From Macrostomum lignano (Eukaryota): a stretch of 64,000 nucleotides of DNA. Where the stretch lies: NCBI GenBank assembly GCA_002269645.1, contig NIVC01001568.1, forward strand, positions 1 to 64,000, written 5' to 3'. Made by a program: the position numbers and the translations under genes. Below, in pieces: positions 18,650 to 64,000 of the stretch. Positions within the stretch are counted from its first letter, which is position 1. The number at the start of each line of letters is the position of its first letter. The notes beneath the pieces were generated by a model, which did no database searches, was not told the origin of the DNA, and was given only the letters and a program-made list of their open reading frames with translations.

Positions 18650-19330
18650 ACTGGTTTTGGTACTGGCAGTAAAGACGTAAAAGAAGAGGGAAGTGTTAAG
18701 AGAGGGGAGAGTGAGGAATAAGAAGAGAGAAGAGAGAAAGAGAGAAGAATGAGTAGAGAATAGAAAAATGAAACAAAGATGAGAGAAGAAGGGAACAAGG
18801 AGAGCAAAGAGGCAAGAGTAGAGAAGGGAGAAAGAAAAGAATAGAAAAGAGAAGAGAAAGAAGAGAAGAGATGAAGGGAGAGAAGAGAAGAGAGATACTA
18901 GAAAAGATAGGAAACTAGAGAGATGATAGATAACAGAATAGACAAGAGAGTTAAGAGAGGAGGGGTGACAGATAAGATATAAGGGAGTAAAATAAGGGGA
19001 AGAAAGAGAAGAGAGTGGAGAGAGAAAAGGGCAAGAGAAGCAAGAGGAAAGGAGAGAAGGGGGAAAGGGAAGAGATAACAAAAAGTAGAGAAAAAAGAGG
19101 AAAGAGAAAATATTCGAGATATTGAAAAATAAGAGAGAAAATGGGAGAGAGAAAAGGGGCAGAGAAGAGAGAAAAGTAGAGAAAAGAGAATAGAGAGAAG
19201 AGAGAGAAAAGGGAAGAGAAAGCAGAGAAAAGATATAATATTTAATAAGAGAAGAAAGGAGAAATAAGAGAGAAAAGGAGAGATAAGAGAATAAAGATGA
19301 GAGAAAAGAGAGGAAGAAGTATCAAAGGAC
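18650..19330 (+). repeat. GA-rich polypurine low-complexity tract
   Basis: About 680 bp almost entirely A/G on the plus strand. Confidence 0.9.
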
Positions 19331-25300: not shown

Positions 25301-25441
25301 GTCTATGGGACTCTCGATGTTGATGCTGAAGAGTTCAGCAGCCACTGCCTCTGCCCCGCCACCCGTCGCTTTCTCAATTTTCAGGTCGCCTCCCTCCTGC
25401 GGCCGCCAGCCAAGTCGGGCCCCAAGCCCGCCGCCTGCTGA
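22333..25441 (+). pseudogene. Ngaro RT-RNase H, split by the LTR-type insertion; the 24032-25441 part is open
   Basis: Left part ends IVSALG and right part resumes AIPKPGSASVRLIHDCS. Motifs CKVDLSQAY, RLPFGAAAS, AYIDDF, FLG; RNase H KTDTCG, INYKE, CDN. Confidence 0.92.
22607..24032 (+). mobile_element. Short non-coding LTR-type element inserted in the Ngaro RT
   Basis: TG..CA ends, 5-bp TSD TGGGA (22602-22606 and 24033-24037), purine run before the second LTR (23724-24032); both LTRs start TGTCGCGACTTTCC. Confidence 0.85.
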
Positions 25442-35371: not shown

Positions 35372-37132
35372 GTTCCGAATGCATGAAGTCGACACGCCGG
35401 ACGCCCTCGTCAGGATCTGCTCTGACTATCTAGCAGACAGGCAAATGCAGGTGAAGGTCAACGGGGCGCTCAGCCAGCCGTACGAGTTGCAGGCGGGCGT
35501 CCCCCAAGGTGGCATCTTGAGCCCCTTCCTATACCTGCTTTTTATCAGCACCATGCCTCGGCCGCAACAACCAAACCTTAAGCGAAGCCAATTCGCCGAC
35601 GACATGGCCATCTGGGCCTCGGCGGACACTTTTGCTGGCCTCAAGACGCTCCTGCAACCCTACCTCGACCGTGTGTGGAACTGGTGTGGGGGGCAGGGGA
35701 TCAAGATCAATGCCAGCAAGAGTCAGGTGATCGCGTTTAACTACAAGCCAACTCGTAGGCGCGATCTTCGCCCTAAGCTAAAACTTGGAGGCACGAGCCT
35801 CGAATACCAAGACGAAGTCCGGTTCCTTGGTATGAACCTGGACTACAGGCTGACCCTCAATTCGCACATAGAGAGAGTAGTCAGCCATGGCCGGGCGCTT
35901 GCCCTATCTATCAACCGCATAGCCAAGCTGACCCGGCTAAGCAGTAATACCCTAAAAATGTTATACAGGGTCTATGTTGAGAGTGCGCTGACCTACGGTG
36001 CCCCGGTGCTGAATATCATAGCACCCAGTAACCTCAACAAGCTCCAGAAAATCCAAAATTTAGCTCTCAGGATCTGTTATGGTGCCCCTAGCTACACCCA
36101 AGTGGCCTACTTGCATGAGCTGGCGGCCATGCCCATGATGGCGGACAGGATCAGAGCCCTGGGCGTAGGCTGGCTATCCAAGGTGAAGGCTGCTGGGGAC
36201 CACGACTTCCACATAGAGCCGGAGCTCCCGAGAGCTGCCCGGAACCGCCCCCCAGTGCTGAACCTGCTTTGGGACAGCCTGAAGAGGAGGCATGCCAATA
36301 GACTAGCAGCTGCGAATGCGGCGGCCCAAGCGGCCCAAAACCCGCCCTAGGCTGACTAGGTACGTAGCCCCAAACCCTGATGCGCCCTGAGATAGTGGCT
36401 GCCCCCCCCCCTCTTTCTGGAGTGAGCCGTCTGTCAGCACACAAATAAATTGTCCAAAACACGAAATAGGCGTAGAATAAAATGGCGAGTGCTGGACCAG
36501 GCGGGAGGGCCTACGACCCGGTAATAGCAGTGCCTACCTGAAAATGCTGGTGAACTTGTGATCCGCTGTCTTCTTCTTTTTTGTTTCCGCCTTTTTATCT
36601 CTTTATTTTATAATCCAATATATTTTCATGCAACTGCGTTTTTACATCTGGCTTTTGCCTCGTTTTATACAAATATTGCATTTTTTTCTTTTACCCAAAT
36701 AACCAATACTGCTTTTATTTACTATATTTTATCCAAATGTTCCACCATAACCATACCTAGTTACTATGTAAAGAAACCGCTTCTCATGGTAGGCCTTTTT
36801 TTACATCTTTTACACTTTTTTATTTTTCCAATGCTCAAATAATTTCTATAAATCCCAAATCCAATATGCACTGCCCCCTTTTCCGTACTGGTCCAAATCT
36901 TTGTGAGGACCCCACTATTTAGATTATTCCCCCTTTTTATTCAGTGCAGTCAGTGCAGATACTACTTTTTAATACCCAAATGTAAAGAATAAATAATTTT
37001 CGAAAACTTTTTTATTTCATGTACTAAATTTTCGTCAATTTAAAATTTATATTAAACAATACATCGGCAGAGCCCACCCAGGGCTGACCCGAGGGACAAT
37101 ACCTTAGTCCCATTCGTTTAACAACAACAACA
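35372..37132 (+). mobile_element. 5'-truncated non-LTR retrotransposon (LINE) inserted in the Gypsy integrase
   Basis: 9-bp TSD ACCTAGTAG (35363-35371 and 37133-37141); (AAC)n tail; 3' hairpin GGGAC/GTCCC; removing the insert restores GTWLLLGMDFYGP. Confidence 0.93.
35379..36350 (+). CDS. LINE reverse transcriptase, C-terminal half (Jockey/I/CR1-like)
   Basis: GVPQGGILSP, QFADD, RFLG motifs. Confidence 0.9.
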   Translation: MHEVDTPDALVRICSDYLADRQMQVKVNGALSQPYELQAGVPQGGILSPFLYLLFISTMPRPQQPNLKRSQFADDMAIWASADTFAGLKTLLQPYLDRVWNWCGGQGIKINASKSQVIAFNYKPTRRRDLRPKLKLGGTSLEYQDEVRFLGMNLDYRLTLNSHIERVVSHGRALALSINRIAKLTRLSSNTLKMLYRVYVESALTYGAPVLNIIAPSNLNKLQKIQNLALRICYGAPSYTQVAYLHELAAMPMMADRIRALGVGWLSKVKAAGDHDFHIEPELPRAARNRPPVLNLLWDSLKRRHANRLAAANAAAQAAQNPP

Positions 37133-40100
37133 ACCTAGTAGCAGCCAGGTACCGTCCGGAATATCTGTCGGCCTCAATGGTGTCTGTCGCAATCCGGTGG
37201 CCGCAGCCTGGCAGTGTGCAGCTCTGGACGAAGAGCTCGCAGTCGCTGCGCATCGGAGGCCACCACACCTTCGTCTGCAGGCGTTTAAGGGTGCGATCGG
37301 CGCCCAGATGACCGGTGGCGCCACTTGAAGGATCGGCCTGCGCAGCGACTCGGGGATGACGATGAGGTCACCGCGGAGTAATACTCCGTCGCTTTCCGAC
37401 AGTTCGCCGCTGATGGACTTGAAGGAGCGCTGGGCTGCCGCTCGCATGTCCCAGCGGCCGGTTTGAATCGCGTTCAGCGCCGCCTGGACGTCCCTGTCGG
37501 TGCGCGATGCTTCCCGAACCTGGTCGAGACTGAAGCCCTTTGGCACGGCCCCGGTCGACACGGCGTTGATGAAGGCGGCGTCGAGCTCTTCACCTACATT
37601 CCGACGCCGCTCTGGCAGTGGCTGCCGACTCAGCAGGTCAGCCGGGTTGGTCGAGCCTGGCCGGTAGAGCAGGTTGAAGCGGAGATGCTGAATGCGCAGT
37701 GCCATTCGCTCGATCCGCGGTGGCGGACGGGAGCCAGGCTTGAAAAGCGGCACGAGCGGTCGGTGGTCCGTCACCACGGTGAAGTCTGGGTCGCCAGCCA
37801 GATAGTGCTCAAACTTGAGACACCCAAATTTGATGGCCAACGCCTCCCGCTCGATCTGCGCGTACCGGTGCTCCACCGGCGAGAGGGCTCTGCTGGCGTA
37901 GGCGACGGGTCTGCTGTTGCCGTCTGGCTGCCGCTGCGTGAGGATGGCGCCGAGGCCGATCGGCGATGCGTCCACCAGGAGCTCCGTGTGCAGCCTGCGG
38001 TCGAAAAAGGCCAGCGTGTCCGCGTCTGAGAATGCCTTCTTGATGCCGTCAAACGCCGCTGTGTGTTTTTCTGTCCACTCCCAGGCTTGGCCCTTCTTCG
38101 TTAGCTGCCGGAGTGGGGCCGCGAGGTCAGCGAAGTTCGGGATGAACTTTGCCAAGAAGTTAGCGGTTCCCAGGAAAGAGCGGACGTCGGCCACGTTGGA
38201 GGGCTCTCGGAAGTTCTGCATGGCGTCAATTTTCTCGGTGGCCGGTTGCATGACCCGGGCGGTCAGGCGCATCCCAAGAAACTCGACAGTCGGCCGGGCG
38301 AACCTGCACTTGTCCTGATTGAGGGTGATCCCGAACTCTCGGAGGCGCTGAAGGCAGGCGTCCAGCCTCTCATGGTGCTGCTTCAGGTCGGAGCCGTATA
38401 CCACCACGTCGTCGTGCGCCCACCGGACGCCGTCGATGCCGCTGAGGATGCCAAGCATGACTCGTTGAAGGATTTCCGAGACATTTGTGAACCCCATGCT
38501 GAGCCTCTTGAGCCGCATCAGTCCGAGGGGCGTGCTGAAGGTGAAGAGGTGACAGCTGCTCTCGTGGACTGGGATCTGATAAAAAGCCTTCCGGATATCG
38601 AGTTTGCTGAACAGCTTGGCGTCTGGCATTTCCTCGGTGATTTCATCCAGCGTGGGGATTTGCTGCTTCTCTGGGATGACGAAAGCGTTGAGATCACGGA
38701 GGTCCTGGCAGATTCGAACGCCACCGTCGTCCTTGGGCACCACCACCATGCGTGACACCCAGGCGCTAGGACCTTTGACTGCCTCAATGATGCCCTGCTC
38801 CTCCAAAGCCTTGAGCTCGTCAACTACGGCCTCTTTCAGGTGCGCCGCCACACGTGAGGGCGCCTGGCAGACTGGAACAGCGTCATCGGACAGCTGGATC
38901 TGGACCTCTACACCCTTGATGCAGCCGATGCCGTTGAAGACTTCTTTGTGTCTCTGCAGGATGGCCTTGAGCTGGGGGTCGCTACACTGCTCGGAGGGTG
39001 TGGTGGCGGCGATGGCATTTATGTTTTGCGGCTTGGTAGCTTCAGGTCGCTGGATCTTCAGCACTCCTAGCTTGAATGCGGGCTGACGCCCCAGTATCGT
39101 CAGGCCGTCGCCGTCCATGATGTGGAAGGTCGCGGTTGTTCTGGCAGATCCCACTTGGATGTCAAGATCGACAGTACCCACAATCCTGAGAGGTGTCGGT
39201 ACCCCGTAGGCGCGAACTTCGGCTCTTGTTGGGCGTGGGCTTGGCAGGCTAAGCGCTCTGAAGGTGCCGAGACTCATGATACTGCAGCTGGCTCCGCTGT
39301 CAATCATCATGGGAAGCTGCCGGTTTGCCACCTGCACAGTCAGTGAGACGTCGGATGGGTATTTGTCGGGGTTGTACAGCGCGAACACATCCTCGATGAC
39401 GGAGCCGTCGGCAGCTGTGAATACAGCATTGGTGCTGATTTGCTGCTGTGGGATCCGGCTGCTGTTTGACTGCCAAGGCTGACGGCAGGCAAGAGCGAGG
39501 TGGTTAGGCTTACCGCAGTTGTGGCAGATCTTGCCCTTGGCAGCGTCGCAGGTAGCGTGGCCTTTCTCGCCGCAGCGGTAGCAGGTGCGCTGCTGCTGGT
39601 CGCCGGGCCTGCTGGTCGTCTGAGCCGGGCCACGCCTCTTCGTTCTCACCTTGTCGCCCTTGGCAACGCTGGCCACGTGCGAGTCTGTCTTCTCCATTTC
39701 GGTACTTTGTTCCTCTGCAGCCTCGAATGCCCTCGCCTTTCGCAAGGCCTCTTCCAGGCTGATGTTCGCCTCCTGAAGCAGCCGCCTGCGCAGCTTGTCA
39801 GAGCTACAGGTTGCCACGAGCTGGTCTCTGATGAGCGAGTCCTTCAGCTGCTCGAAGTCGCACGGCTCTGCCGCAGTGCGCAGTCTGGCGTACCAGGACT
39901 CGATGGACTCTCCGGTGGCCTGGGTGCATAGGCGGAACTGATATCTGGCGAATACTATGTTCTTTCTTCCATTGAAGAATGTCTTCAAAGCGTCCAGCGT
40001 CTGCTTGAGGGTGACTTGGCCGTCCTCTGTGGCCGCTGCAGGCTTGGCCTCCTCGCGGATGATGTCGGCGATTTCCTTGCCTGCTGTGTAGCTGAGTAGT

Positions 40101-40715
40101 TTGCACTTTTGCTTCTCGTTGGTGATGCCTGATGCATCGATGAAGTCTTCAAAGCGGTCCGCCCATTGACTCCAGCGCTTGCCCGCGTTGTGTGGGTCTG
40201 CTGATACTGAGAATGGCTCAGGGGGGGGGGCAGTGAGAAAAAGTTGGCTGCCATGATTTGTTTACCGCGCGGTAGGCGGCTTGCGACGCCACTGTAGAGG
40301 CGAAGCCGAGAGAGAGAAAGTTATGTGTTGTGTGTAGCCGATAAAGCCTCAATCCATTGTAGGCTCTGTGCGATCGATTTATATATTTAGCAGCGACCCT
40401 GCAGTTGAGACTGCGTACATTAAAAACAGAAAGCCAAGAATATTGGATGTACATCGGAAATGCACACCAGGACTAAAAACACTTATTATGCAAGCACTGG
40501 GCAGCAGATGCCTACAAAGAGTTGACCCCATCATACGGTGATCCCCTCAGACAATCCCTGGCATACACCTGGTCAGTGTCGCAAATTCCTTCCGATCTTG
40601 TCCCGCTTTGGGACTGTTTTGTTCTGCATCACATTATTACCCTTCACAGTGACCACATTTAGACCATTTTGTTCAGGACCACAATGCTACCGTTTCGTAA
40701 ATATCGTACAGTATG

Positions 40716-41703
40716 TAGTGTAAGCATCTTTTGTGTAATTTCTGAATTCTATTAGTTAGTTAGCTTCTGTATTATTGTTGATAATTATTGTATTTTGCTT
40801 TAATTTAGTCACGTTTTCGATGTACTTTTTCTTGTTAGTTAGTTTATTTTGCGTAAACAGGTTAGAAGTTAGACGCCAATTCTGTGACTCAGCGGAGGGT
40901 TGAGTTTTTCTGCGAACCCCAGCTTTGCGCGGCCAGCCAATCAGAATCGGCCTGGACCCTGGCACGCGGCAAAATCGCACTCTACCCAGCGCCGAGGGCA
41001 CAGTGCAATTCAGCTTAGCGAGCGGCCGGCCAGACGACCACCACCCGGCTTGAGGGGGGGGGGGGTTTGAGGGTCTGACAGTGACTATATATGAAAGTGT
41101 GTTTGGCGGTCGGATCTCTTCTCTTCTCCCCGGCTTTGGTTTTGTTCCAGCTTCCCGGCCGCTTTGCCCTATTTTTGTGGTTCGCGCTTTGAGGCGCCTG
41201 AGTTCGTCACCCCGGTCCGTGTTTTGCTTCCCTGCCCGACCGCTTCAGTCTTATAGCGTAACGTCTACGGCAAATTTCTGTCTGAAGTCGTCGCTATAAG
41301 CGCGGTTAGATAGAGACTGTCGGATTTGACCAAGTACGTGGCCTCGACCCAGAGAGCCTCAGTGTCACACTGAAGGGCAGCGCTGATAGAACTTAGTCAG
41401 TGCTCCGTTGAACGGTCAATTCGGCAGGGCTCTCGTTTGAGTGTAGGTTCTGGTTTGGGCCAGGGATTAGGAGTTTTTCTCCGTGGTCCCGTGTTCGGTT
41501 CCTTTTCTTCAGCTGAGATCCACTTGCCAATTGCATTATTAATTATTATTAATTGTTTTATCGTTATTATTGGTTCGTTATCATCAGTTCGAATTATCTG
41601 CGCCGCGAATTACGTTAAGAATCTTGTAACTTTATTAAATCTAATTAAATCGTCGAGTAAATCAAATTAATTCATTCTTACTAGGATTATCACTCTCTAA
41701 ATC
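40716..41703 (+). mobile_element. Solo LTR of the same family as the LTR at 60672-61636
   Basis: Colinear similarity over ~1 kb; 4-bp TSD TATG (40712-40715 and 41704-41707); CCAAT and TATATA motifs. Confidence 0.88.
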
Positions 41704-42431
41704 TATGCGACAGGAACCGGTCGATCGAATCCGGAGATTAATGCCAGAATTGGCCAGGCACTATAGTTTGAGGATTGGTAGACGGGCATTCCATCAATGC
41801 CGATTTTGATGTCCAGTTCAATACCTTGCAAACTTTCCGGAAGTAAAATTGAGTTGTTCAATCTTAGCAGGTTGTTTCGCAGAATGAAGCCGATATTTGA
41901 CGCGATGCCTTGGAAGTAGACAAAGTGCCCTACTCCCATTGAATATTTCTGCACACTTTCCTTGCCATCCTTCGTTAGAAAGTAGAGCGACTTGGAGACA
42001 GGCAAACCGCGGCTGTGTAGAGCGTTAAGTAGAAACTGCATGGCTCTGTGAGATAAATTGTAGAGCAGAAAGAGAAACAACAGCTCGTCGTCCAGACTTT
42101 CCATACTGGGCCTTGCTGCATTAGATTCAACGCTTTCATCTTCGTTGTCCATTTCTTCGGCGTCGTTTTCGTCCGAGATAATCAAAGACTCAAGGCACTG
42201 AACTAGGTATCGCGAGTCGAATTCACGATTAGCGGTGTGGCTGTCAGACGAATGAGGGAATTCATCGACTGCAGCTTCGAATTGATCGGCAGAAGACGAT
42301 GGAGGCAATTTTTCGGATTTCGCTCCCAACTGTTCAGCGTTCTTGGGACAGGGTAGATTGTTGGAGAGCCAGTTTCTAAACTGCCGGCTTGGATTTGTGT
42401 CGTCGAAAGTTTTCCTTCGTTTGGACGACAT
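41704..42431 (-). pseudogene. N-terminal fragment of a CMC/EnSpm-like transposase
   Basis: IKIGIDGMPVYQSSNYSAWPILA resembles the first catalytic-Asp motif (IDGLP...WPIL) of animal CMC-type transposases; cut by the solo LTR. Confidence 0.65.
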
Positions 42432-42736
42432 GTTTTGAAAATAAAACGTTAGCACAAATTATGATGATACTGTTGACGACGTGCATTAGTGACTAGTGTT
42501 AGTGTGGATGGGGGGTGGAAATCGAGGAAGCAGCAAAACGGTGAGTACATGGATGTATGGGATTTGGAGCTGGAGGCTTTTAATTGGCCGACAGCCTTCT
42601 CTCCCCTGGCCCTATGCTCACAGCGGCCCATTTCATATACATGGGTTTGGTTTATTCTTCGAGCCAGCAACCATACGCCTACGAGTATCAGTCTAGACTC
42701 TCGATTTTCCTAGTTTCAACACCAAATTTTTCTGTT

Positions 42737-43559
42737 ATGGCTACAAACAAGCTCCGATTTATCGTTTACTTCCCAAGCGATAAGCAAATTCTGGAAGTGT
42801 CGGGTTGCAGCATCTCCCCTGGGGAGTACCAGGACTTCGACAGCGAGGACTGGTCTAAACTAGGTGAACAAGACAAGTATTTTTCGGAACCTATGCTGGT
42901 TCAAGCCGAATATGAAGGTAATTGGTTCGAGGCCGTCATTGTTCAAGTTGTTCTTGACGAGAATACCAGCACGGGGCCCACCATAGCTTTCATTAGAGAC
43001 TTAATTAGGGTAAAACGAAAGTCAATTGATGGCATCCTGCGCAGCATCATCCGCATCAACCATGGCAAGCGACGAAACCGATTTCTAGCAATGTCGGTGA
43101 GTAATTTTTAATGTCTTAGTTCTTGGTATCTTAGTTCCAGATCTCAACCTAGACGCCAATTCAAATTAATTCAATTTTTTTATTCTTTTAATTAATTTAG
43201 TTTTAATTCAAATTAAATTACAGTCAGTGAGAACGTCGGAGGAAGAAAGCGAGGCTGAATCGTGTCTTCGTCGACCAGTCGCTGCGAAGGTGACGACTAG
43301 TGACTCGTCACCCCAGTCATCGCTGCTGAAGCCTTTCAACCCGGCGCTGTTGCTGGCAACTGCGACAACACCGACGCAAAGGCCGCTGACTGAGACTCAA
43401 GCAGCGCCGACACCAAGGCCGTCAACTGCTTCAACAGTTCCCAAATCGCCGATGTCGTCGACACAATGGACGCCGGCACCATCAGGGTCAAGAACGCCAG
43501 CGGCAGCAGATGACGAAGCGGAGCTCTCACTGAGGGAGCCCGAGATGGCACTTAACTAA
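42737..43559 (+). CDS. Second, spliced gene of the same DNA transposon, divergent from the transposase (exons 42737-43096 and 43224-43559; further remains after 47986)
   Basis: MATNKLRFIVYFPSDKQILEV start; GTGAGT donor at 43097; TTACAG acceptor at 43223 keeps the frame into an S/T/P-rich exon. Confidence 0.5.
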
Positions 43560-43743
43560 CATGGCACGGCAAAGGAAGAAGTGCTCAGTACCGGACACGG
43601 TTAAGGACAGGGACGAGGCGAGAACAACGGGAGGACGTAAGTATAGATGGAAGGAAGCGTTGTGCGAAGGATGTGGTAAGAAGATGGCTGCCACTAACAT
43701 GGCACGCCACAGAAAGATCTGCCAAAACTGACCGGACCGGCCC

Positions 43744-46700
43744 TGTTAGCACTGCGATGAACTTTTATTTATTAGAGAATGCACTTTGCTTAGTAGCCGT
43801 CAACGGCTGAGAATCCTATTGATGTCTATGGACATTTGTACAGTTCAATTCGGTGGCTTAAAGAGTTGCCAAAATATAATTGAAAAGACCAAGCGTCTGC
43901 AGAGTTAAGCTAAAGGCTGAGACTCGATCAATTTTCTTACTCGTCCCAAAAAACGAACACTGGCGACGACGGCTGGTCTTATCGAGCCTCTGGAGACAAA
44001 AGCCCCAGCGGAAATTGAGCGCTGGTTCCAACGCTTCGAAGCAGTTTCCAAGCTGAACAAGTGGGATGACACCGCTCAGAAGTTCGCCCTCATCGCACAC
44101 CTCGGCAAGAAGGCCTTCGCACTGTTGGCGGATGCGCTATTGCCAGATAAGCCTGACGCCAAGACCTACGCTGATCTGAAAACTCAGCTGATCAAGGAGA
44201 CGAAAGCGGCGAAATCCGAGATTGCATACCGGTACGCGTTCCATCACCTCAAGCAGGACGACGGCGAAGACGTTTCTGCCTACGCAAGAAGGCTGCGACT
44301 GGGTTCGGAGAACTGCGGCTTTTCAACCGCCGAACTGAATGACCGCCTGCGGGACCAATTTATCTTCGGATTGTCGAACAAGGAGATCGTCAGAAAGTTG
44401 CTCACGGAGAAACTGAAAGATCTGACGTGCGAAAAAGTAACTACGGTGGCCAATGCATGCGAGGCCGTAAGTCGCGGCGAGAGACAAATCTCAGGAGGCG
44501 AAATTCTACATGTCAAGTCAGATCCTCCTTCGACATCGAAAGCCCAGAAGCCAGCGTACCAGAAAAGCGACCAGAAGAACGGCCAATTGCGCCAAGTCAA
44601 GTGCTTCTGCTGCGGCAAGGAAGGACATACAAAGGACCAGTGCCACCACCGGACTAAGACATGCCTTCAGTGTGGTAAGGTTGGTCATCTCAAAGCAGTT
44701 TGCAGGTGCGGACCTAACAAAGGTGGACAACGGCCTTCAACGAGCAACAAATGGTCACAAGGAGGCGGACGGCATCCAAGGAGCAGAGTCAGAGCAATAG
44801 ACGATGCAGCTGATCAAGTCGGGCACATTTTCTCGACGATGACGCCGGAAGATGGTCGTGGAAGCAGAAGGATAACGCGACATGTAGTAGTCAATGGTAC
44901 GAAAATCAAGATGCTACTGGACACCGGGTCGTGCTCAACGTTCGTGTCAAGCTCGGTGTTTCAAAGCCTACTCGAACCAGCAAATGTAAGGCCCACAAGC
45001 AGACGATTCGCTGCGTATCAAGGGGATCCAGTGCTAGTGAAAGGCGAAGCTATTGTGAACGCCAAGCTAAACTCAGTAAGTTCCGACCTAACTCTGTTTG
45101 TGGTGGACAACCCAAAAGCCGAATCTATCTATGGCCTAGATTGGATTGCTGCCCTTGAGCCAGACCTCTACACTTTTATTACAAAATGTACGGTGCCTGA
45201 GGAAGACGGCTCGAATCCTACAACGGCGTGCTCTGTAAAAAGATTTTCTGTATCATTGGTCATTGAGGCGGGAGCAAAGCCCATCTTTTTTAAACCTCGG
45301 CAAATTCCATACGGGATTCAGGACGATGTCAAGGCCGAGTTGAAGAGAATGGAAGAGGCTGGACAGCTCCAGAAGGTGGAATCCAGCGAGTGGGCTACAC
45401 CCATTGTCTGTGTTCGAAAGCAGTCTGGAAAGGTTCGGATTTGTGGTGACTACAAGGTTACCCTCAACCCACTGCTGAAAGACATGGTGTCAACAACGCC
45501 CACAATTGACGAAGTTCTGTCAAAACTAGGCCGTGCCCGCCGATTCTCTACGTTGGACCTATCAAATGCGTACCTCCAAGTACCGGTGGATGAAGACAGC
45601 AGCGTGATGCTGACGTGGAGCACTCCGTTCGGCTTATACAGGCCCACTGCATTGGCATATGGAGTAAAGCAAGCACCAGCAATTTTTCAGTCATTCATGG
45701 ACAGGTTGCTTCTAAACATAGAAGGTGTCATTTCCTACCAAGATGACATTCTTGTGTGGGGTTTCAACCAACAGAGTCATGACAACAGACTGTCCAATGT
45801 GCTTCGAATTTTAAAGGAGAGTGGACTGAGCATTAACGAGGAGAAATGCACTTTTAACAAGCCATCTATCATGTTCCTGGGATATGAGATCAGTGAAAAC
45901 GGCATTCGTCCACCACCAAAGAAAGCCAAGGAGATTGCAGGATTAGAAGAGCCAAAGAATCTCAAGCAGCTGCAGTCATTTATCGGGATGGTCGATTTCT
46001 ACGGACGGTGTATCAAGAATCTCGCGAGCCTGAAAGAACCTCTAACGAAACTGACCAGGTCAGGAACGAAGTGGGCATGGGGCCCAATCGAGCAGAGAGC
46101 CTTTCAGAGCATCAAGGACGAACTACACAATGCAGTCGCTCTCAAGCCTTTTGATCTATCAGATAAGATCGTTCTCACTACTGACGCGTCACCATCTGGA
46201 CTTGGTGCAGTCCTCGAGCAGTCGTCCGGGCCCGTAATATTCATCTCAAAGACTCTAACTCAAGCAGAGCGCAACTATGCTCAAATTGAACGCGAGGCCC
46301 TCGCCATTGTATGGGCTGTGAAGCGCTTACACAAGTATTTACTGGGACACAAGTTCGTCATTCGCACAGACCACCAACCGTTAAAGTTCATCTTTGATCC
46401 TGGCAGATCCTTGTCAACTGTTGCTGCAGCGAGAGTGCAACGCTGGGCAATCACTTTGATGAGCTACGAATACGCCATTGAGTGCAAGAGAACTGCTGAG
46501 ATTCCCGTGGCCGATGCCCTGTCAAGACTGCAGAACAGCACGTCTGAAGGAGAGCAGTTTGACATTAGCTCAGTGCAGGACTGCCTACTAGATTTTCCAA
46601 TCAACAAGGAGCGTTTGAGAAGACAATCGAAAGAGGATTCAGAGCTCCGGAAGTTATTCGCTCAAGTCAAGTTTGGCTGGAATGCAGAAGGACTTCGAGA

Positions 46701-47985
46701 ACTACAACAGTTTAGCCGATTCAGGGACGAGTTAGTCATTGAGAATGGATTGCTGTACAGAGGTATTCGGCTGGTTGTACCAAAGCAGGAGCGTTCTGCA
46801 ACTTTGCGATTGCTGCACGAAGGACACATCGGACCAGAAAAGATGAAATCCATAGCTAGACAATGCGTCTGGTGGCCTGAAGTAGATCGAGACATCGGAA
46901 AGTATGCGAAAGGATGTAGTTCGTGCCAGGAAAACAAGGATCATGGGGCCACCCGACAATGGACTTCGTGGCCGGATGAGACCGAATGCTGGTCAAGAGT
47001 TCACATGGACTACGCAGGGCCTATGAAGGGAGGAAACTACATGTTGGTACTGATTGATGCATTCAGTAAATGGGCTGAAGTTCACGTGACTAAGGGAACC
47101 ACTTCATCTGAGACAATCAAGCGACTGCGAAGAACGTTCGCCCAAGAAGGCGTGCCCGTGACTATTGTTTCCGACAATGGACCTCAATTTGTATCGAAAG
47201 AAATGCAAGGTTGGTTAAAAGGAATCAACTGCCGACATGTTCTCACACCACCGTATCATCCAAGGTCAAATGGACTGGCCGAGCGCTTTGTGAGAGATTT
47301 AAAAAATCACGTCCGAGCCGCTGAAGAAGACGACCTTCAGAGTTGCGTCGACCGGTTTCTGCTTCAATACCGGAACGCGAAACATTCTACGACCGGAAAA
47401 TCGCCCTCTGAGCTGATGAGAGGTCACCTACTTCGCACCCCTGCATTTTCTCTGGCACGTGAGCCAGTCTGGGTGAAAACCTACAACAACGAGATGACAA
47501 AGTGGAAGTCTGGCGAAGTGGTGGCAACAGAGGGAAAGGTTGTGGTCGACGTTGAGCTGGAGGACGGAAGGCGTGGACGCTACCACCGTGAACAGACAAA
47601 GCCAAGGAGTTCCGGTTCCAATGACCTGGTGGAGATGGAGACTGAAGAACATGTGCACACGGATCAAGAGTCTGGTCTTCGGAGAAGTAATCGCCATCGG
47701 CAAGTACCAAGGCGACTTGAGTACCGCAAGCTTGGTGTACCTACCTAGCTGTTAACTAATGGGAAGGAGTGTTAGCACTGCGATGAACTTTTATTTATTA
47801 GAGAATGCACTTTGCTTAGTAGCCGTCAACGGCTGAGAATCCTATTGATGTCTATGGACATTTGTACAGTTCAATTCGGTGGCTTAAAGAGTTGCCAAAA
47901 TATAATTGAAAAGACCAAGCGTCTGCAGAGTTAAGCTAAAGGCTGAGACTCGATCAATTTTCTTACTCGTCCAAAAAAACGAACA
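43744..47985 (+). mobile_element. Intact young Ty3/Gypsy (Mag-like) LTR retrotransposon, 4242 bp
   Basis: 216-bp LTRs (43744-43959 and 47770-47985) with about one difference; TSD GGCCC; PBS TGGCGACGAC at 43961; PPT GGGAAGGAG. Confidence 0.98.
43960..47748 (+). CDS. gag-pol: Uninterrupted gag-pol polyprotein (two CCHC knuckles, PR, RT, RNase H, integrase)
   Basis: CFCCGKEGH..C, LLDTGS, YQDD, TTDAS, HEGH..C..C, MDYAG, SDNG, NGLAE. The frame is open from CTG at 43960. Confidence 0.95.
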   Translation: MATTAGLIEPLETKAPAEIERWFQRFEAVSKLNKWDDTAQKFALIAHLGKKAFALLADALLPDKPDAKTYADLKTQLIKETKAAKSEIAYRYAFHHLKQDDGEDVSAYARRLRLGSENCGFSTAELNDRLRDQFIFGLSNKEIVRKLLTEKLKDLTCEKVTTVANACEAVSRGERQISGGEILHVKSDPPSTSKAQKPAYQKSDQKNGQLRQVKCFCCGKEGHTKDQCHHRTKTCLQCGKVGHLKAVCRCGPNKGGQRPSTSNKWSQGGGRHPRSRVRAIDDAADQVGHIFSTMTPEDGRGSRRITRHVVVNGTKIKMLLDTGSCSTFVSSSVFQSLLEPANVRPTSRRFAAYQGDPVLVKGEAIVNAKLNSVSSDLTLFVVDNPKAESIYGLDWIAALEPDLYTFITKCTVPEEDGSNPTTACSVKRFSVSLVIEAGAKPIFFKPRQIPYGIQDDVKAELKRMEEAGQLQKVESSEWATPIVCVRKQSGKVRICGDYKVTLNPLLKDMVSTTPTIDEVLSKLGRARRFSTLDLSNAYLQVPVDEDSSVMLTWSTPFGLYRPTALAYGVKQAPAIFQSFMDRLLLNIEGVISYQDDILVWGFNQQSHDNRLSNVLRILKESGLSINEEKCTFNKPSIMFLGYEISENGIRPPPKKAKEIAGLEEPKNLKQLQSFIGMVDFYGRCIKNLASLKEPLTKLTRSGTKWAWGPIEQRAFQSIKDELHNAVALKPFDLSDKIVLTTDASPSGLGAVLEQSSGPVIFISKTLTQAERNYAQIEREALAIVWAVKRLHKYLLGHKFVIRTDHQPLKFIFDPGRSLSTVAAARVQRWAITLMSYEYAIECKRTAEIPVADALSRLQNSTSEGEQFDISSVQDCLLDFPINKERLRRQSKEDSELRKLFAQVKFGWNAEGLRELQQFSRFRDELVIENGLLYRGIRLVVPKQERSATLRLLHEGHIGPEKMKSIARQCVWWPEVDRDIGKYAKGCSSCQENKDHGATRQWTSWPDETECWSRVHMDYAGPMKGGNYMLVLIDAFSKWAEVHVTKGTTSSETIKRLRRTFAQEGVPVTIVSDNGPQFVSKEMQGWLKGINCRHVLTPPYHPRSNGLAERFVRDLKNHVRAAEEDDLQSCVDRFLLQYRNAKHSTTGKSPSELMRGHLLRTPAFSLAREPVWVKTYNNEMTKWKSGEVVATEGKVVVDVELEDGRRGRYHREQTKPRSSGSNDLVEMETEEHVHTDQESGLRRSNRHRQVPRRLEYRKLGVPT

Positions 47986-54524: not shown

Positions 54525-55335
54525 ACAATATTGTGTGAGGGTGTTGAGGGTGAGGGCATGTGGGGGGGCATTGGCATGTGGTATATTTCGCAGAACACAG
54601 ATTTTTCAGAATTTTTATACTTTTAAAAAAGGAGGGTTAAAAAATATCTCTATGCGCCATACTCTATTTTTAGTAATACCAGTAATATCACGCAAACAGC
54701 GAGTGACTATGCTATTGTCCGAAAAACCTGTTCTCAACATTTATTTTTAGAACTTCCAAATATGATAAATGTTAACCTGAATGTGACCCAAGTCTCGCCC
54801 TTTTTAATTAAAAAACCCCACCTGTCAAATAAAATTTTTTTTCCGTGAACTCATAAAAAACCGGTTTTGAGCTCAAGTTCGACTCGAGGCCGACAATCGG
54901 TGTATAAATACAAACGCACAATCCGAGCTGAAATCTCAGACTCTGAGCAGCCTCTAAAGATCTTAAAGCTTGCTGGAGCAGCTAAGCGAGGCTACATCTC
55001 TGAGGGAGAAGTTAACCAATTGGTGAGCCTTTGTTTGAGTCTTTGTTATTTGGATTTAATGAGAGCGATTTTATTGCCAGCCATTACTGATCAGTTGATT
55101 TAACTGAGTTCATTGAATTTGAGGCCTCCCCTTTTCCTAAGGGATTAGATAGGATCTACGGACTGATTCCAATACCCTTAAAGGATTATTGAGCGAATGA
55201 TTTTGGATTATCCTAGATTAACCGATAGAAGCACACGACTCCGATTCCGTTAGTTCTAGAAGAAGACGCCCTTTTGGAGGACCTCGTGTTGTTATACAAG
55301 TTGATTTTGTTATTAGGGCGCATCGTTGATATTGA

Positions 55336-55480
55336 TTTCTGCACTCAAGGAATACATTGATTTCGGCACTCGAGGAATACATTGATTTCTGCACTTGAGG
55401 AATACATTAATTTCTGCACACGAGGAATACATTTATTTCGGCACTCGAGAAATACATTGAATTCTGCACTCGAGGAAATA
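55336..55480. repeat. 24-bp tandem repeat, about 6 copies
   Basis: Unit GATTTCTGCACTCGAGGAATACATT with variants. Confidence 0.9.
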
Positions 55481-58044
55481 CTGCAACGTCGATTTAATTG
55501 TTACGCTCTCATTTTCGGCCGATTTTAAACTTCAAGAAGACCACCCCAGGAGGAACAGATCTGCGAAACGAGCTCTACAGACGAGCGCGACAAAGAAGAG
55601 GAATAAAAAAACGAGCTCGGAAAACCTGCCCGACAAAGATGAGGAGCCGGCAACAGTAAGTGATCACTAAATTCTGTTCCCAGGCTTAGGGTCAAGAAGT
55701 GGGAGTTCGAGCGCTTAGACACTAGACATATTTTATTTCGAGCTCGAGGACCGTCAAGAATTCTAATTCGCTCTCATTTTGGTCAACTGACAGATAAAGT
55801 TAAGGACTCTAAGAGACCAGCTATTCAGCTATTCAGCTAACAGCTATTCACCCAAACCGACCACCGCCAACGCTCAGCAAGCTAGCCAGCCCTACAACCA
55901 ACAAGACTCAGTCGACTACAGACCGCAAGAGGATCCGCTGCAGTAAGATTTTTTAGATTTTGTATATACCTAGGTTCTTGTTTCTCAGTGTCTAGAAGTG
56001 GGAGGTTTTTGAGTGACTGATCACCGGCTGACTTTGGCATGAATTATCTGAGAGGATTGGAAAAGATCCACAGGCCTAGCGACCACTAGCTACCAGGCTG
56101 TCCTGTCCTTACATTGCGCTTACATTTGTATTATTAGTTTTAACAGATGCAATGAAACAAAAATATGTGCCAGTTTTGTGCCTAGAATTCCCTTCTAATA
56201 CCATTGGTAATTTTTTGCACACAGTTTGCTTTTATCCGACCCTGCTTTTTATTAAAAGGATCGACACGACAGCACAGTGTTGATTAGTGCCTACCGACTC
56301 TTAAGACAGGAGTCCAGCCGGGATGGAATTAAGGTAACTTTAATATATGATTGTTCAATAGAAGAACATACCTCTAATTATAATTTAAAGTTTGCTTGCT
56401 GTGTCGTGCACTTTTGCAGTGCAAGTGCACCCCTTTGGTTAGGGTGCAGTTTGCAGTAGCCTAGGTTTTTGCAAGTCCCCCCTTCCGAGTGCGTGGCTGG
56501 CTTGCTGGTATGCTGGCTTTGTGTTTTGTTTGCTGCGTTGCTGATTGGCTACAGCCAGCTTTGCCCTTTGTTGTCGTATCTATGGTTGGAGGGCTTGTGG
56601 CCTTCCCCCTCCGCAGGCGGTAGCTATTTAGCGGCTCCCGCCGGGCCTTGGGGCCGTGATGCACTCTTCCTTCTCCCTCGCTCCTTCCCCATTCTTGGGT
56701 TTAGCACAAAAGAGACAGCCCCTTACCCTAGCCCTAGATCAGCTTCGGTCAGACGAGTTTTGTGAACTAAATAAACCATTAGCAAGGCCATCATTTATAC
56801 CGGCTGGGCATCAGCCTCTATCAGATACCAGGTAAGTGCATTGTCCCGTCTTCTATCATTTGGTTGCCTAGGAGAATCAAAAGTCCAAGTGTCCTGATGC
56901 CAACCTAGGTTAGACCTATCAATAGTGTATTGCATCATCTGTATATTAGCCTGTGCATCCTGGTGCCTTGCTTAAGGTGATTGGCACTCCAGTGCCCTGA
57001 TGCGGGTGACAGTCACGTGGGTGCACTCTGATGTCCCAGACACAGGGAAATTGTAAGCAAGCAGTAGTGTCTCAACACAGCAGCAAAATGACTAGTATAA
57101 TGTATTTTTAATGTACCCTATGCCCCCTACAGACCCTGTAGGCAAGGGATGCAGGGATACAACAGCGCTGAATGCACTGGAATGAATTTAGCACATAATT
57201 TATTATATTAGATAGCGTTTGACAGTAAGAACATAATCCAATATATATTCAACTTCTAGGTAAAAATCTTCAACTATGATTAGATGATATTGCCAAAAAC
57301 ACTGGGAATCATTGGTTGATTAGTGTGGTTGATAAAGGCAAGAAAATATTTGTGTGCAATAATGCCCCAAGCGTAAACACTAGTAGTGCAATGTGCGCAT
57401 TACAGAACTTTTTTAAATATAGAACATTGATAGCATTTAATTTCTTGCAGCATATTTAATATTGTCAAGCTGAGTATGCTGCAACAAAATAAGTTTGATT
57501 GTAGCACATTTGCCTATGCTTCTGCCAACCTATTGTGCCACCAAAAGGATATTAATTTTAATTATAAACTTTCTAAATTGTTTTTGGATTTTGTGTTTTT
57601 ATTTATATTTAGATACAATAATTTTTATAAAAATATTATAATATGTGGGTACCACTGCCAGTATAGAACATTTAGAATCTATTTTCACAACAAAAAAATC
57701 TAATCTAAGGTCTATTTCTACTGCATTTTAAATTCATTTCTTTATTTTAAGACATGCACCTTTTTAAATAGCTAATAGTTTTAAAACAACTTTGGAATTT
57801 ACTTTTGTTTTTATATTATAAATAGTGATAAATTGTTATTAATTAATAAAAAACATGCCTCCACCTTTTCATCATTCAGGCATTAGATAATTATTGCTCA
57901 TTCTTGTGATAGATCTACCAAACACCCTTACTTCCCTCTTCAAGCAACATTAGTCAAACTTGACTAGGCAGAAGGTCCACTAAGGCTTGGCAATAACCTC
58001 CTTGTCCTTTATTTGTCCTTTTCCTCAGACCCCCCTGCTTACTA

Positions 58045-59168: not shown

Positions 59169-62100
59169 TATAACCCCAGGCCGCGCCGCAGGCGCGAAGG
59201 GTCTTTTTCTGTTACTAAAAATGAACCGAGTTTACATGAATTTCACATGATACATGCTAACGAATATAAAAATTCATGTGCTGTTTTACACACAATGCAC
59301 CGAGGACAGAGAATAAAAAGCGGCTATTGTGCTCCAGCGGGGCAGGTCATTTTTGGATAGAGAATCTTTTGTGTTTGAGCCTTCTATATTTTCTATACAA
59401 AAAAGAGTAAAAAAAGAGCTATAAAATAAAACCGCTCGAGATGCTTGCACACTACCCTTTTGTGCCAGTGCTATTTTTGTCGTTCATTTTTGCCTTACTA
59501 GTAACCAAGTTGCCTAAATACATTAGCTTTTCTCGTTTTTTACGTAAATTCATTGTTTTTGTCATTATTAATTTTAGCATTATCAAGAAGTAAGTATGCG
59601 TAAATAAATAACTGGTTTTGTACTGTAACTTTGCTACTAATAAATTCTTTGATGTATTTTTGTTTAAATTTGTCCGCCATATTTAGTAAAACTAGTATAT
59701 ATACGCGCAAATAAACTTCTTTTCTGCATGCTTCTTGTGCCTCTCCCTTTTGGCAAATTGCTCCTAGCTAAGTCTGGAGTATGAACAGTTTGTTCTAAAA
59801 ATAGAATTGATTCAGCCTTCAGCCCTCCTTTCTTTCCCCCATAACCCCGTATTCTTTAGAAGCCCCGACCGTTTCTCCCCTCCCGGTGAACATCTCCCCT
59901 CTATCCCCCCCTCGTTGAAAGAACTGAGTTCTCCCTTCCTTGACCCTTCCCCAGTCAAGTGTACAATCAGGCCTCCCTCCCTCTCCTTCTCCCCCGTTCC
60001 CCCCCCCCCCAACGTACACGCCGCCCAGTCGTAGCGCATACCTAGCGAATTACCCCAAGTTTTAGATATTCTCTTTCCCTATCAGGCCCATTTCGTATCC
60101 CATGTCAGCATTCCCATTAGATATTGACATGCCCCACTAGATACTGAAATTACCCATTAGGTATTGAAATTCCCCATTAGTGCGTTTATCCCAGGCAACT
60201 CTGATCCGCCGCGCAGCCCTCCCTCGGACAGTTTTAATATATAGACAGTGTCTTGCCGCTCGGACACTCACGCCACCAGGAGCAACCATTGGCTTACTCC
60301 TATTAGTAATAGAACTAGCATATTCTTCAGAAATCCCAAGAATCCCATAAATTCCCTCACAACAGATTTAGTGTCAGCCTAGGATAATTTCCCTCCCCCA
60401 AGACCCCTGTAACACTTTCTTTAGTGTCTGCAACTTAATTTTTCTGTTACAAAAAATAGACAAAAATGACACACGTTACTCATATACAAAATCTGAATGA
60501 ATTGCAGGTAGGAGACCCAGTTGAATACCGAGGTGAGGGTCTTTTTGATGTGGTTGGAACAGCAGCAAACTTCGTTAAAGATAATATGGGTCTTATAGGC
60601 CAAGCAGGCTCTGCAGCAGGTTCTATAACAAACGCTCGGCAGTAACAGAACAAACGGCAGTAGAAGAACTGTAGTGTGAGCATCTTTGCGTGTAAATTGA
60701 CTGTATTAGTTTCTATATTGTTATTGAATTGTTATTTTGCTTTAGTTTAGTCATGCGTTTTTGATGTACTTTTTCTTGTTAGTTAGAATCTAAATTTGTA
60801 AACAGGTTAGAAATCAGACGCCATCTGTGACTCAGCGGAGGGTTGAGTTTTGTCTGCGAACCCCAGCTTTGCGCGGCCAGCCAATCAGAACCGGCCTGGA
60901 CCCTGGCACGCGGCAAGTTTCAGTTCTACCCGGCGCCGCGGGCACAGTGCAAATCGGCTTAGCAAGCGGCCGGCCAGACGACCACCACCGGCTTGAGGGG
61001 GGTTTTGTGAGGGGTTGACTCTGACTATATATGAAAGTGTGTTTTGGCAATCGGATCTCGCTTCTCTCCTTTCCCCGGTTTTGTCTTGCCCAGTTCCCGG
61101 CCGGTGGCCCGACTTTTCCTCCCCTTGTTGGTTCGCGCTTTGAGGCGTTTTGATTTCATCACCCCCGGTCCATATCTTTGTTCCCGCCCAACCGCAGTAG
61201 TCTTGTGGCGTAACGTCTACGGCAAATTCCTGTCTGAAGTCGTCGCTATCAAGCGCGGTTAGACAGAGACTGTCGGATCGGATCAAGTACGCGGCCTCGA
61301 CCCCGAGGGCCCCAGTGTTACACTGAAGGGCAGTGCCGATAGAACTTAGTCGGTACTCCGTTGAACGGTCGGTTCGGCAGGGCTCTCGTTTGAGAGTAGG
61401 TTCTGGCTTAGGCCAGGGGTTAGGAGTCTTCTCCGTGGTCCTGTGTTCGGTGCCTCTTTCTTCTTCAGCTGAGATCCGCTTGTCAGTGCGTGTATAATCA
61501 TTATTTATTAACCGTTATTATCGTTTGTCAACTCTAGTTATCTGCGTCGTTTGTCTAAATCTTGTAACTCAGCTAGTCAAATTAAACCGTCAATCAAGTT
61601 AGTTATTCTTGAAATAGGATTATCACTCTCTAAATCTTTCGGTTTGTGTTTCCTCGTGTTCTTTATTTTCTTGTACTGTATCTGCGGCTATTGGAGAAGA
61701 CTGGTAGAACTCGCCGACCGGCGATAGGCGATTAGGATTAATAGCTTTAAAATCTCCGAACGCTCCAAGTAGGTTTGTCTAGGGCCTAAATAATTGCTCA
61801 CCGTGCATGCTATTATCTAATTGCCTATTTATCACAAGTGGAGCCCCTGGGAATCCAATAGTTAGCAGGCGGCAGTTTATTGGTAGGCGCTCTAAGTGAG
61901 CAAGCTTAGACTAAAACTCAACGAGTCTGTTCCAGGCTCGTAGCGGCTATTTCGTCAACCACGCAGTGTGCAGCAATTCCGCATTAGGTGTGGTTTTGCG
62001 GTTGGCCAGTTACCCCAAAATACTGAATAGGATTTAGGAGTGGGAAAAATAAAATTGACTTTCTAAAACTAAAATTAGCACTTTAATAGAAACTTGCGTG

Positions 62101-62364: not shown

Positions 62365-63597
62365 ATGGCGCAGGACGGAGAAAATAGTCAAGAATCGAAG
62401 TCAGTTGAGATTAGGAACGAAGGCGAAATAGATGAGGCCGAACATTTGAGAACAGTAGTGAGAGAACTGCAGGATCGCATAAGAAGAATGGAAACCGAAA
62501 ATCCCGAACCTAGAGTGATTTTGAAGTCGCATAACAGCGTAGCAAAGCCCAAGCCATACCGACTTGGCTCAGATTTCGAATTGTTTCTAAGAATCTTCAA
62601 CAACTACTGTCAAGGCAACAGTATAGACGAATCGGCTAAAGTGTATCAACTATTGTCGCTCCTAGACGAAGACGCCTACAAGGTTTACATTAACTTAGGC
62701 CTAGCGAGCACCGAATCATTTGAAAGCATCGAAAAGACTTTAAAGGACAAATTTAAGCCCGTAGGACAGAAGGAAGAAGCGAAGTTAGAGCTGATGAACC
62801 GGAAGCAGAAGGAAGACGAATCATTAGAAGAATTTTACGACGCACTAGTTGAATTAGTTAGGAAGGCAGGACTAGAGAGTCAGGCCAGGGAGCGAGTTTC
62901 TGAACGATTTGAAGCCGGCATAGCGAATTATAAAGTCAGGCGCGCAGTTATTGCCTATCGCAGAACGCATGAATCGAAGTATCAGACGCAAGATTTACTG
63001 ACTGCAGCAAAGAACGAGGAGATCCTCGAAGAACTCGCAAATCCAGGCAGTCAAAAGAATAGGAGGAAGCAGGAGGGCTCAAATACTTTGACAGCTCAAG
63101 TAGAAAAAGAGCAGAAAAAGCCAGCACCCAGCGCGGGGCAGGGCCACCAGTCATTTGGACCTCAGTTTGCTTCCCCAGCCAATTATCCTTCGCAGTACCA
63201 ACCGTACCAGAATTATCAGCCTCAGTTCGACTACAGGCAATGGCAACCTAGGTTCGCCCATAGACAGATGAATTCAAGCTATAGGCCACAGGCACCAGTG
63301 CAGCCTCCGAATAGCTTTCGGCCACAGCATCACATGAGCAGTTACTCGAGACCCTATAATAGGCAGTCTTCGCCATTTGTCAGGCCCGCCATGACACGCC
63401 CGTCACGCTTTGGTCACGAGGCCGGAGGGGCCAATGACAGGTTCACACCTTCGGGGGCGAACGCGCCAAATGCGAGAAAGGCCTGTTATGAGTGCGGCGA
63501 AGAAACTCACCTGGCTAGAGACTGCCCAGTTAGACGAAATTCTTTAAACTACCGACGGGGCGGCACCAAGGGAGGGCCAACCGCCCCCAGCCACTAA
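62365..63597 (+). CDS. gag: Gag, 410 aa, intact
   Basis: KPKPYRLGSDFELFLRIF, RKQKEDESLEEF, CYECGEETHLARDC (CCHC). Confidence 0.9.
   Translation: MAQDGENSQESKSVEIRNEGEIDEAEHLRTVVRELQDRIRRMETENPEPRVILKSHNSVAKPKPYRLGSDFELFLRIFNNYCQGNSIDESAKVYQLLSLLDEDAYKVYINLGLASTESFESIEKTLKDKFKPVGQKEEAKLELMNRKQKEDESLEEFYDALVELVRKAGLESQARERVSERFEAGIANYKVRRAVIAYRRTHESKYQTQDLLTAAKNEEILEELANPGSQKNRRKQEGSNTLTAQVEKEQKKPAPSAGQGHQSFGPQFASPANYPSQYQPYQNYQPQFDYRQWQPRFAHRQMNSSYRPQAPVQPPNSFRPQHHMSSYSRPYNRQSSPFVRPAMTRPSRFGHEAGGANDRFTPSGANAPNARKACYECGEETHLARDCPVRRNSLNYRRGGTKGGPTAPSH
63543..63587 (+). promoter_or_regulatory. -1 programmed ribosomal frameshift signal
   Basis: T TTA AAC in the gag frame (63543-63549), a 7-nt spacer, then a 7-bp stem GGGGCGG (63557-63563) / CCGCCCC (63581-63587). 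Confidence 0.85.
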
Positions 63598-64000
63598 ACC
63601 GATTCACTCCCAATAGAAGAGCTGCAGCAGTAGAAGATCAGCAAGTTAGCTCAGGCAATGTAGAATATGGCAATTTAGTTTGGTATAATTATTACAGAGG
63701 CTACGGATTCCTGCGAGATAGCAATAATAGAGATATTTTCTTTCATGTGACTAATACAAACATAGCAACTGATTACGAAATTATGCATTTTCTGCGCCAG
63801 AGGGCGACAGTAAAATTTATTCGCACTAACGATACTACTCATAGTAGGAAACAGAGAGCGGTCAATGTTAAAATTTGCTCAAGCGAGGAACGCAGATTAG
63901 CAGAAATTAACAAACAGAAGTCAGCGAGCTTAGCTAGACAGTCAGAGCAATTGACAGAAGAATTAGAGGAACGAAGCGAAGCTGCGGCAGCTCAGAGAAG
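63543..64000 (+). CDS. -1 frame ORF (presumed pol N-terminus) containing a cold-shock domain at ~63663-63872; open to the window end
   Basis: 152 codons without a stop: EYGNLVWYNYYRGYGFLRDSNNRDIFFHVTNTNIATDYEIMHFLRQRATVKFIRTNDTTHSRKQRAVNVK, then a charged helical segment. Confidence 0.8.

Follow-up and report, generated by a model that had tools for sequence, protein, structure and literature searches.

A cold-shock domain at the predicted gag-pol frameshift junction of a Ty3/gypsy-type retrotransposon from Macrostomum lignano

The right end of a 64,000-nt stretch of Macrostomum lignano DNA (contig NIVC01001568.1; the whole stretch is called the window here) holds the 5' part of a retroelement that is cut at position 64000. 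A -1 reading frame overlapping the end of its gag gene appears to encode a cold-shock domain (CSD). This raises the question whether the domain is genuine and kept, and what it could do for a retrotransposon. The DNA of the window is eukaryotic and rich in repeats, with several gypsy-type open reading frames (ORFs) and short GT..AG introns. The evidence supports the assignment of its right end to a Ty3/gypsy-type long terminal repeat (LTR) retrotransposon, represented by LTR, primer-binding motif, gag and the start of pol. An earlier inspection of the letters alone, here called the sequence-only reading, had claimed an LTR retrotransposon with a CSD right after the CCHC knuckle, reachable only by a -1 shift. 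This core was borne out. The element is an otherwise ordinary Ty3/gypsy element with predicted -1 frameshifting, and the CSD is a rare conserved domain gain.

Translation of 63543-64000 gave 152 codons with zero stops and the motifs GNLVWYN..GYGFL..DIFFH..TVKF..RAVNV, exactly as read before. The Pfam family PF00313 (CSD) was matched with an E-value of 2.7e-7 and 30.8 bits, the curated cut-off being 27; the match spans residues 43-110 of the -1 product and profile positions 3-64 of 66. A short basic stretch precedes the domain. An AlphaFold2 (AF2) model, built on an alignment that contained a single retroelement relative and nine CSD proteins of cellular type, reached a mean predicted local distance difference test score (pLDDT) of 83, with 85-98 per 10-residue block across the domain and the helix that follows. 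Its strands (residues 40-49, 54-59, 64-68, 89-96 and 104-112) form a five-stranded barrel with block pLDDT of 85-95. A short helix lies within the beta3-beta4 loop, and a long helix (residues 114-151, pLDDT 91-98) reaches the window end. In a Foldseek comparison of this model with the PDB, cold-shock domains only were matched at E<=0.001 (CspA, CspB, CRHSP-24, YBX1, YBX2), with target TM-scores up to 0.87; Unr and Lin28 were just above this threshold. Profile and model together show the first folded module of the -1 product to be a genuine cold-shock domain. The chance of a random open frame of 152 codons is about 7e-4 by our own estimate. The recurrence of the domain at the same place in two distant relatives is more decisive.

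These relatives were sought because the window stops before any protease. A search with gag yielded one protein, with 40% identity (BLASTP), on a 5.3-kb metagenome contig (L001). A HMMER scan of the -1 product against 1.84 billion representative proteins gave 66 matches. Ten of them were checked by Pfam: nine were cellular proteins with several CSDs, and the tenth (P0005) had a CSD joined to a retropepsin, on a 6.5-kb contig (L002). In MAFFT alignments the window gag is 36% and 44% identical to the gags of L001 and L002, respectively, and an exact look-up of the window gag protein found no record. L001 and L002 belong to the IMG co-assembly 3300040801, and three further contigs (L003-L005) to samples 3300040776 and 3300040778. 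The metagenomes are from brackish microbial mats of the Etang de Berre, France (PMC8605020). Pattern scans based on the domain alignment gave no confirmed relative in JGI metagenome contigs, IMG/VR and GTDB; the mat samples of L001-L005 seemingly lie outside that metagenome collection.

In L001, one uninterrupted -1 ORF (1235-2770) comes after gag and encodes a basic stretch, the CSD, an E/K/Q-rich linker and a protease (LIDTGASH); reverse transcriptase (RT), RNase H and integrase lie downstream in shifted frames. L002 likewise has gag and then a -1 ORF with the CSD, the linker and the start of the protease. A frame of 1326 aa carries the remaining protease, RT, RNase H and an integrase with a GPY/F tail. 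The Pfam domains of L002 are the protease, RVT_1, RT_RNaseH, Integrase_H2C2 and rve, and the order protease, RT, RNase H, integrase is complete in L002 and partial in L001. Order and Pfam families are those of Ty3/gypsy elements. Hence, the expectation that pol domains follow the CSD was confirmed in the relatives: the domain stands in the protease frame in both, and in L002 the other enzymes come after it. The segments of L001 and L002 matching the long helix of the window are rich in E, K, Q and L and run on into the protease.

L003-L005 are 99.7-99.8% identical to L002, and the flanks 5' of the LTR differ between L003 and L004. Near-identity and different upstream flanks indicate that the L002 family is multi-copy and recent. 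No 3' LTR was found within the L002 contig by comparison with L003. Three further observations were made on these contigs. L002 was deposited inside a metagenome-assembled genome (MAG) named 'Kangiellaceae bacterium' (MEE4247031-33), a binning error for a eukaryotic contig. The C-terminal tail of its pol (5500-5800) has tandem repeats of about 14 residues (SPQTIPADTQ...-like), visible in L005 as internal DNA repeats of 83-89%. A 102-aa open frame (6099-6404) lies between the pol stop and the contig end.

The CSDs of the three lineages (window, L001 and L002) align unambiguously, with 39-57% pairwise identity over 72 residues and 26 invariant columns. W-Y, Y-G-F and I-F-F-H, at base-stacking positions of the CspA/CspB type, are invariant, and the aromatic RNP1/RNP2 motifs W-Y-N, (G/K)-Y-G-F and I-F-F-H are present in all three. 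Synonymous sites are saturated between the lineages, the proportion of synonymous differences (pS) being 0.74-0.87. The proportion of nonsynonymous differences (pN) is 0.29-0.44 in the domain, 0.35-0.45 in gag and 0.48 in the flanking linker, which is poorly conserved (29% identity). As the pN of the domain resembles that of gag despite saturated pS, selection has maintained the domain and a one-off insertion can be discarded. The ratio of the two substitution rates (dN/dS) is not computable because synonymous sites are saturated and L003-L005 differ too little. The sequence-only reading had named family members lacking the domain as a refutation; L001 and L002 keep it.

How the domain is reached was examined at the gag-pol junction. 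Stops are absent from the -1 frame between 63534 and the window end, and gag ends at 63597; a change of frame is therefore possible only within 63534-63597. Inside this overlap the gag codons TCT TTA AAC place the heptamer U_UUA_AAC in X_XXY_YYZ register (63543-63549). At the aligned position and in the gag frame, G_UUA_AAC is found in L001 (1256-1262) and G_GGA_AAC in L002 (1166-1172). The former is a non-canonical variant and the site of equine arteritis virus. U_UUA_AAC and G_GGA_AAC are among the most shift-prone eukaryotic heptamers (reviewed in PMC5009743). A 7-nt spacer and a 6-bp stem closing a 19-nt loop follow in all three lineages; in the window version the stem has 7 bp and the loop 17 nt. 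The spacer places the hairpin within the 5-9 nt downstream of the heptamer where a stimulatory structure is looked for (3/3 lineages), at a stability not above shuffles. In a gap-free three-way alignment 18/18 cells of the 6-bp stem are paired, with 3/6 pairs changed on both sides, and pairing falls to 33-56% when the partner is shifted by 1-3 columns as a control. No Met occurs between shift site and domain in the window and L002, therefore the domain should arise only in the frameshift product. From these signals, pol would be expressed by programmed -1 frameshifting with U_UUA_AAC, the 7-nt spacer and the GC stem-loop, as one part of a reading of the element that we hold to be probable as a whole. 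Pairing of the G-rich loop with a C-rich tract that lies 17-19 nt further on, to form a pseudoknot, was also considered; it was dropped, as its register differs between the lineages.

The remaining 5' part is that of a gypsy element. Gag exceeds the Pfam cut-offs both for a capsid-like domain (Retrotrans_gag, 25.2 bits against 24.1) and for a CCHC nucleocapsid knuckle (zf-CCHC at residues 373-388, 23.9 bits against 20.8). The first 1 kb or so of the upstream repeat (60670-61637) has a second copy, 80% identical, at 40714-41704. Both begin with TGTAGTG and their upstream flanks are unrelated, hence the LTR start was placed there. The sequence 3' of the truncated copy is unrelated as well. The 3' end of the LTR was placed by a conserved junction, ACA-NN-TGGAGCCC, common to the window, L001 and L003/L004. 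It reads ...TCACA-AG-TGGAGCCCCTGG in the window (61834-61850), ...TTACA-CT-TGGAGCCCCTGG with the same 12-mer in L003 and L004, and ...TTACA-CT-TGGAGCCC in L001. The LTR of L003 begins with TGTAATG. The LTR termini and the TGGAGCCC(CTGG) motif are thus common to the window and its relatives, which places them in the same family. By these sequence signals 60670-61836 is a probable 5' LTR, followed by a putative primer-binding site. The extent of the LTR is inferred, because no 3' LTR lies within the window. Rfam and tRNA scans across the window gave zero matches, and no tRNA gene matching the primer-binding motif was found in it by the tRNA scan.

The sequence-only reading had called the domain Y-box-type. 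The span from H68 to F92, on which this was based, is 25 residues inclusive, and 25 also in L001 and L002; it is 25 residues in YB-1 and 21 in CspA. This part of the claim stands, but bacterial Csps score alike by sequence and fold. In single-sequence comparison the best bacterial Csp reached 21.7 bits and YB-1 about 18.7, and in profile comparison bacterial Csps reached 27.5 bits and Y-box domains 24.8. Foldseek ranked matches to bacterial Csps, CRHSP-24 and YBX interleaved. By sequence, profile or fold no closer kinship to Y-box CSDs than to other CSDs was found, and the domain has no special affinity to any subfamily of cellular CSDs. The label thus rests on the length of the beta3-beta4 loop. 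A word-index homology search with the 152-aa product gave nothing, and with the three-sequence profile it gave only a bacterial CspA-family protein. The matches of Foldseek against viral models (BFVD) were CSD proteins of phages and giant viruses alone, with reverse-transcribing viruses absent. The domain may have been captured from the host, as the sequence-only reading proposed. Bacterial Csps score as well as Y-box CSDs, so that neither is favoured as the donor.

What the domain does can be approached from its place and its conserved residues. Located between the nucleocapsid knuckle and the protease, and predicted to occur in Gag-Pol only, it is probably competent for nucleic-acid binding, as judged from sequence and model. 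We consider it probable that the element carries a frameshift-only CSD acting as a single-strand chaperone in Gag-Pol. The chaperone role itself is likely by analogy with CspA, YB-1 and retroviral nucleocapsid. The domain would bind single-stranded RNA or DNA and would be packaged in as few copies as the enzymes. It might act alone or while still attached to the nucleocapsid after cleavage. By preventing the folding of genomic RNA, tRNA primer and minus-strand DNA, it could aid priming and primer placement, strand transfer and processive reverse transcription through structure. Such an activity would add to that of a nucleocapsid that has no more than one or two knuckles, and the long helix may help Gag-Pol molecules to pair.

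Several points weigh against this reading. The window stops short of the protease, so the enzymes of the window copy would lie beyond 64000, and the pol frames of both relatives are broken: in L002 by a single change of frame near 1931-1937, within the protease, in L001 by several such changes past 2770. Either decay or assembly errors may account for these breaks. Taken singly, the CSDs of L001 and L002 are just below the PF00313 cut-off (26.9 and 20.5 bits) and match the N-terminal half of the profile only, and the known lineages are three only. With only three sequences, 13/500 shuffles match the observed covariation of the stem. The hairpin is no stabler than shuffles of the GC-rich stretch: folding of two spans of the window gave z = +0.55 and -0.31, and L001 gave z = -0.29 and -1.77. 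Nucleic-acid binding, frameshifting and processing are predictions from sequence and model.

Other roles were weighed on the same evidence. The domain and helix could chiefly govern protease activation: the helix would pair Gag-Pol and the domain would make pairing RNA-dependent, so that the protease fires only inside RNA-containing particles, a folded counterpart of the retroviral transframe region (p6*). The domain lies directly upstream of the protease in the relatives, the helix 3' of it is long and confidently predicted, and L001 and L002 have E/K/L-rich segments of like kind. However, the sequence of the linker is the weakly conserved part (see the identity and pN above), and the conserved residues of the domain are aromatics of nucleic-acid contact. 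This role, to which we give a minor but real chance, is compatible with that of a chaperone.

Rather unlikely, in our estimate, is a frameshift-gated RNA sensor, in which the CSD would bind its translating RNA in cis, mark it for packaging and feed back on frameshifting. If this were true, the element would set its own Gag:Gag-Pol ratio and gain a cis-preference. Decidedly unlikely is a feedback of the domain on its own mRNA that tunes the Gag:Gag-Pol ratio near the shift site or gives a preference for packaging in cis. The domain would leave the ribosome about 40 codons past the shift site, cold-shock domains bind single-stranded RNA, and G-rich loops with C-rich tracts 17-19 nt past the stem are present in all three lineages. 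This is reasoning from position alone, however; the register of the G/C tracts in the window differs from that of L001 and L002, and a binding motif has not been identified.

Mimicry of a host Y-box or Lin28-like protein, by which RNA regulators or small-RNA silencing would be diverted in line with a suggestion of the sequence-only reading, is very improbable. The loop is as long as in Y-box CSDs and the pairing of knuckle and CSD is reminiscent of Lin28, but the domain is no nearer to Y-box or Lin28 CSDs than to bacterial Csps, the Y-box A/P and C-terminal domains are absent, and a minor product locked within a polyprotein fits this role poorly. That open frame and CSD match are a product of chance or a decayed passenger without function is scarcely credible and already contradicted: a stem-loop no stabler than shuffles and very few homologues among 1.84 billion proteins would agree with it, but the Pfam score exceeds the curated cut-off, the fold is confidently predicted, and three lineages with saturated pS retain the domain at one and the same site, with pN as low as in gag.

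The coordinates of the element and of a related copy are collected in Table 1.

Table 1 Features of the cold-shock-domain element and of an older copy of its LTR family in the window
Feature	Position	Strand	Basis
Probable 5' LTR, about 1167 bp, TGTAGTG...TCACA, with TATATATG at 61026	60670..61836	+	Extent inferred
Primer-binding-site-like motif TGGAGCCCCTGG, 2 nt past the LTR end	61839..61850	+	
gag ORF, 410 aa, capsid-like domain and one CCHC knuckle	62365..63597	+	ORF list, Pfam
CCHC zinc knuckle CYECGEETHLARDC, gag residues 374-387	63484..63525	+	Coordinates from sequence
Slippery heptamer U_UUA_AAC (candidate), gag frame	63543..63549	+	Sequence and frame
Predicted stem-loop GGGGCGG / CCGCCCC, 17-nt loop, 7 nt 3' of the heptamer	63557..63587	+	Minimum free energy fold
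Beginning of the pol (transframe) reading frame, which continues to position 64000	63543..64000	+	152 stop-free codons
Cold-shock domain, residues 40-112 of the -1 product	63660..63878	+	Pfam, AF2, Foldseek, conservation
Predicted long alpha-helix 3' of the domain, perhaps a coiled coil, truncated at 64000	63882..64000	+	AF2
Older truncated copy, same LTR family	40714..41704	+	80% identity to 60670-61637

Two other gypsy elements of the window are without a CSD and about 29% identical to the pol of L002. One is a separate young element at 43744-47985, bounded by 216-bp direct repeats with 100% identity (43744-43959 and 47770-47985); its single ORF of 1207 aa encodes protease, RT, RNase H and integrase. 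The other is a gypsy-type ORF on the minus strand (37118-39988) with CCHC, protease, RT and RNase H. ORFs with an RVT_1 match alone, at 24032-25441 and 35379-36350 (plus strand), may be remnants of non-LTR elements. Beside the truncated LTR, the region 41703-43560 holds a 250-aa ORF on the minus strand and an ORF on the plus strand with an apparent GTGAGT...ACAG intron near 43098-43224; no Pfam match was found for either, and they may be host genes. Furthermore, a tandem array with a 25-bp unit is present at 55306-55502 (about six to eight copies, 64-90% identity). Pronounced strand skews were seen at 18001-20000 (GC skew 0.37) and at 28001-30000 (GC skew 0.22, AT skew 0.32), and both stretches are probably simple or satellite repeats. 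Long overlapping ORFs lie on both strands at 28173-29559.

In comparison with known systems, the element shares with Ty3/gypsy elements (Metaviridae) the TG..CA ends of its probable LTR, a candidate primer-binding motif, the gag capsid domain with CCHC knuckle, the predicted -1 shift at an X_XXY_YYZ heptamer with downstream stem, and, in the relatives, the order of the pol enzymes and an integrase tail of the GPY/F type. In contrast to these elements, a folded CSD and a long helix fill the interval between nucleocapsid and protease. The junction region is used in other elements as well: betaretroviruses such as mouse mammary tumour virus and Mason-Pfizer monkey virus have a transframe protein of nucleocapsid and dUTPase (p30), and junction regions are also found in human immunodeficiency virus type 1 (HIV-1; p6*) and Ty3. 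As with the dUTPase and p6*, the extra module follows the frameshift site, is joined to the nucleocapsid, is predicted to be made by frameshifting only and lies 5' of the protease. However, the dUTPase is an enzyme and p6* a disordered spacer, whereas a nucleic-acid binder of the oligonucleotide/oligosaccharide-binding (OB) fold is predicted here.

With CspA/CspB, YB-1, Lin28 and plant CSPs the domain shares the PF00313 family, the five-stranded barrel and the aromatics W, Y/F-G-F and F-x-H. In Lin28 and plant CSPs the CSD is also paired with CCHC knuckles, but here the knuckle precedes the CSD and the order is reversed. The domain differs from those of cellular proteins by its place inside a retroelement polyprotein and by the helix predicted in the beta3-beta4 loop.

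A cellular domain fixed in one lineage of LTR retrotransposons is also known from the chromodomain of chromoviruses and the AlkB N6-methyladenosine demethylase of orchid elements (PMC9289625), and the same paper calls such fixation a rare event. Those gains differ from the present one in domain, presumed role and position, which is transframe here and not at the integrase C-terminus or in a separate region. No report of a CSD in an LTR retrotransposon was found in the searchable literature, with subscription journals and Repbase reports outside its range, so the novelty presumed by the sequence-only reading holds to this extent. One literature match for 'CSD' meant the chromo shadow domain.

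To our knowledge, LTR retrotransposons have seldom fixed a domain of cellular origin, the cases being the chromodomain, dUTPase and AlkB, and each case revealed a step of the life cycle that is tuned by the element. An OB-fold RNA binder that is conserved in the transframe region would add a new case to these. Retroviruses use this place for regulators of protease activation and betaretroviruses for their dUTPase. These elements are nearly missing from protein databases, and one copy is mislabelled in a bacterial MAG. They would provide a system for asking what a second chaperone, other than a zinc finger, adds to reverse transcription or packaging, how domains confined to Gag-Pol are used, and from which sources they are captured.

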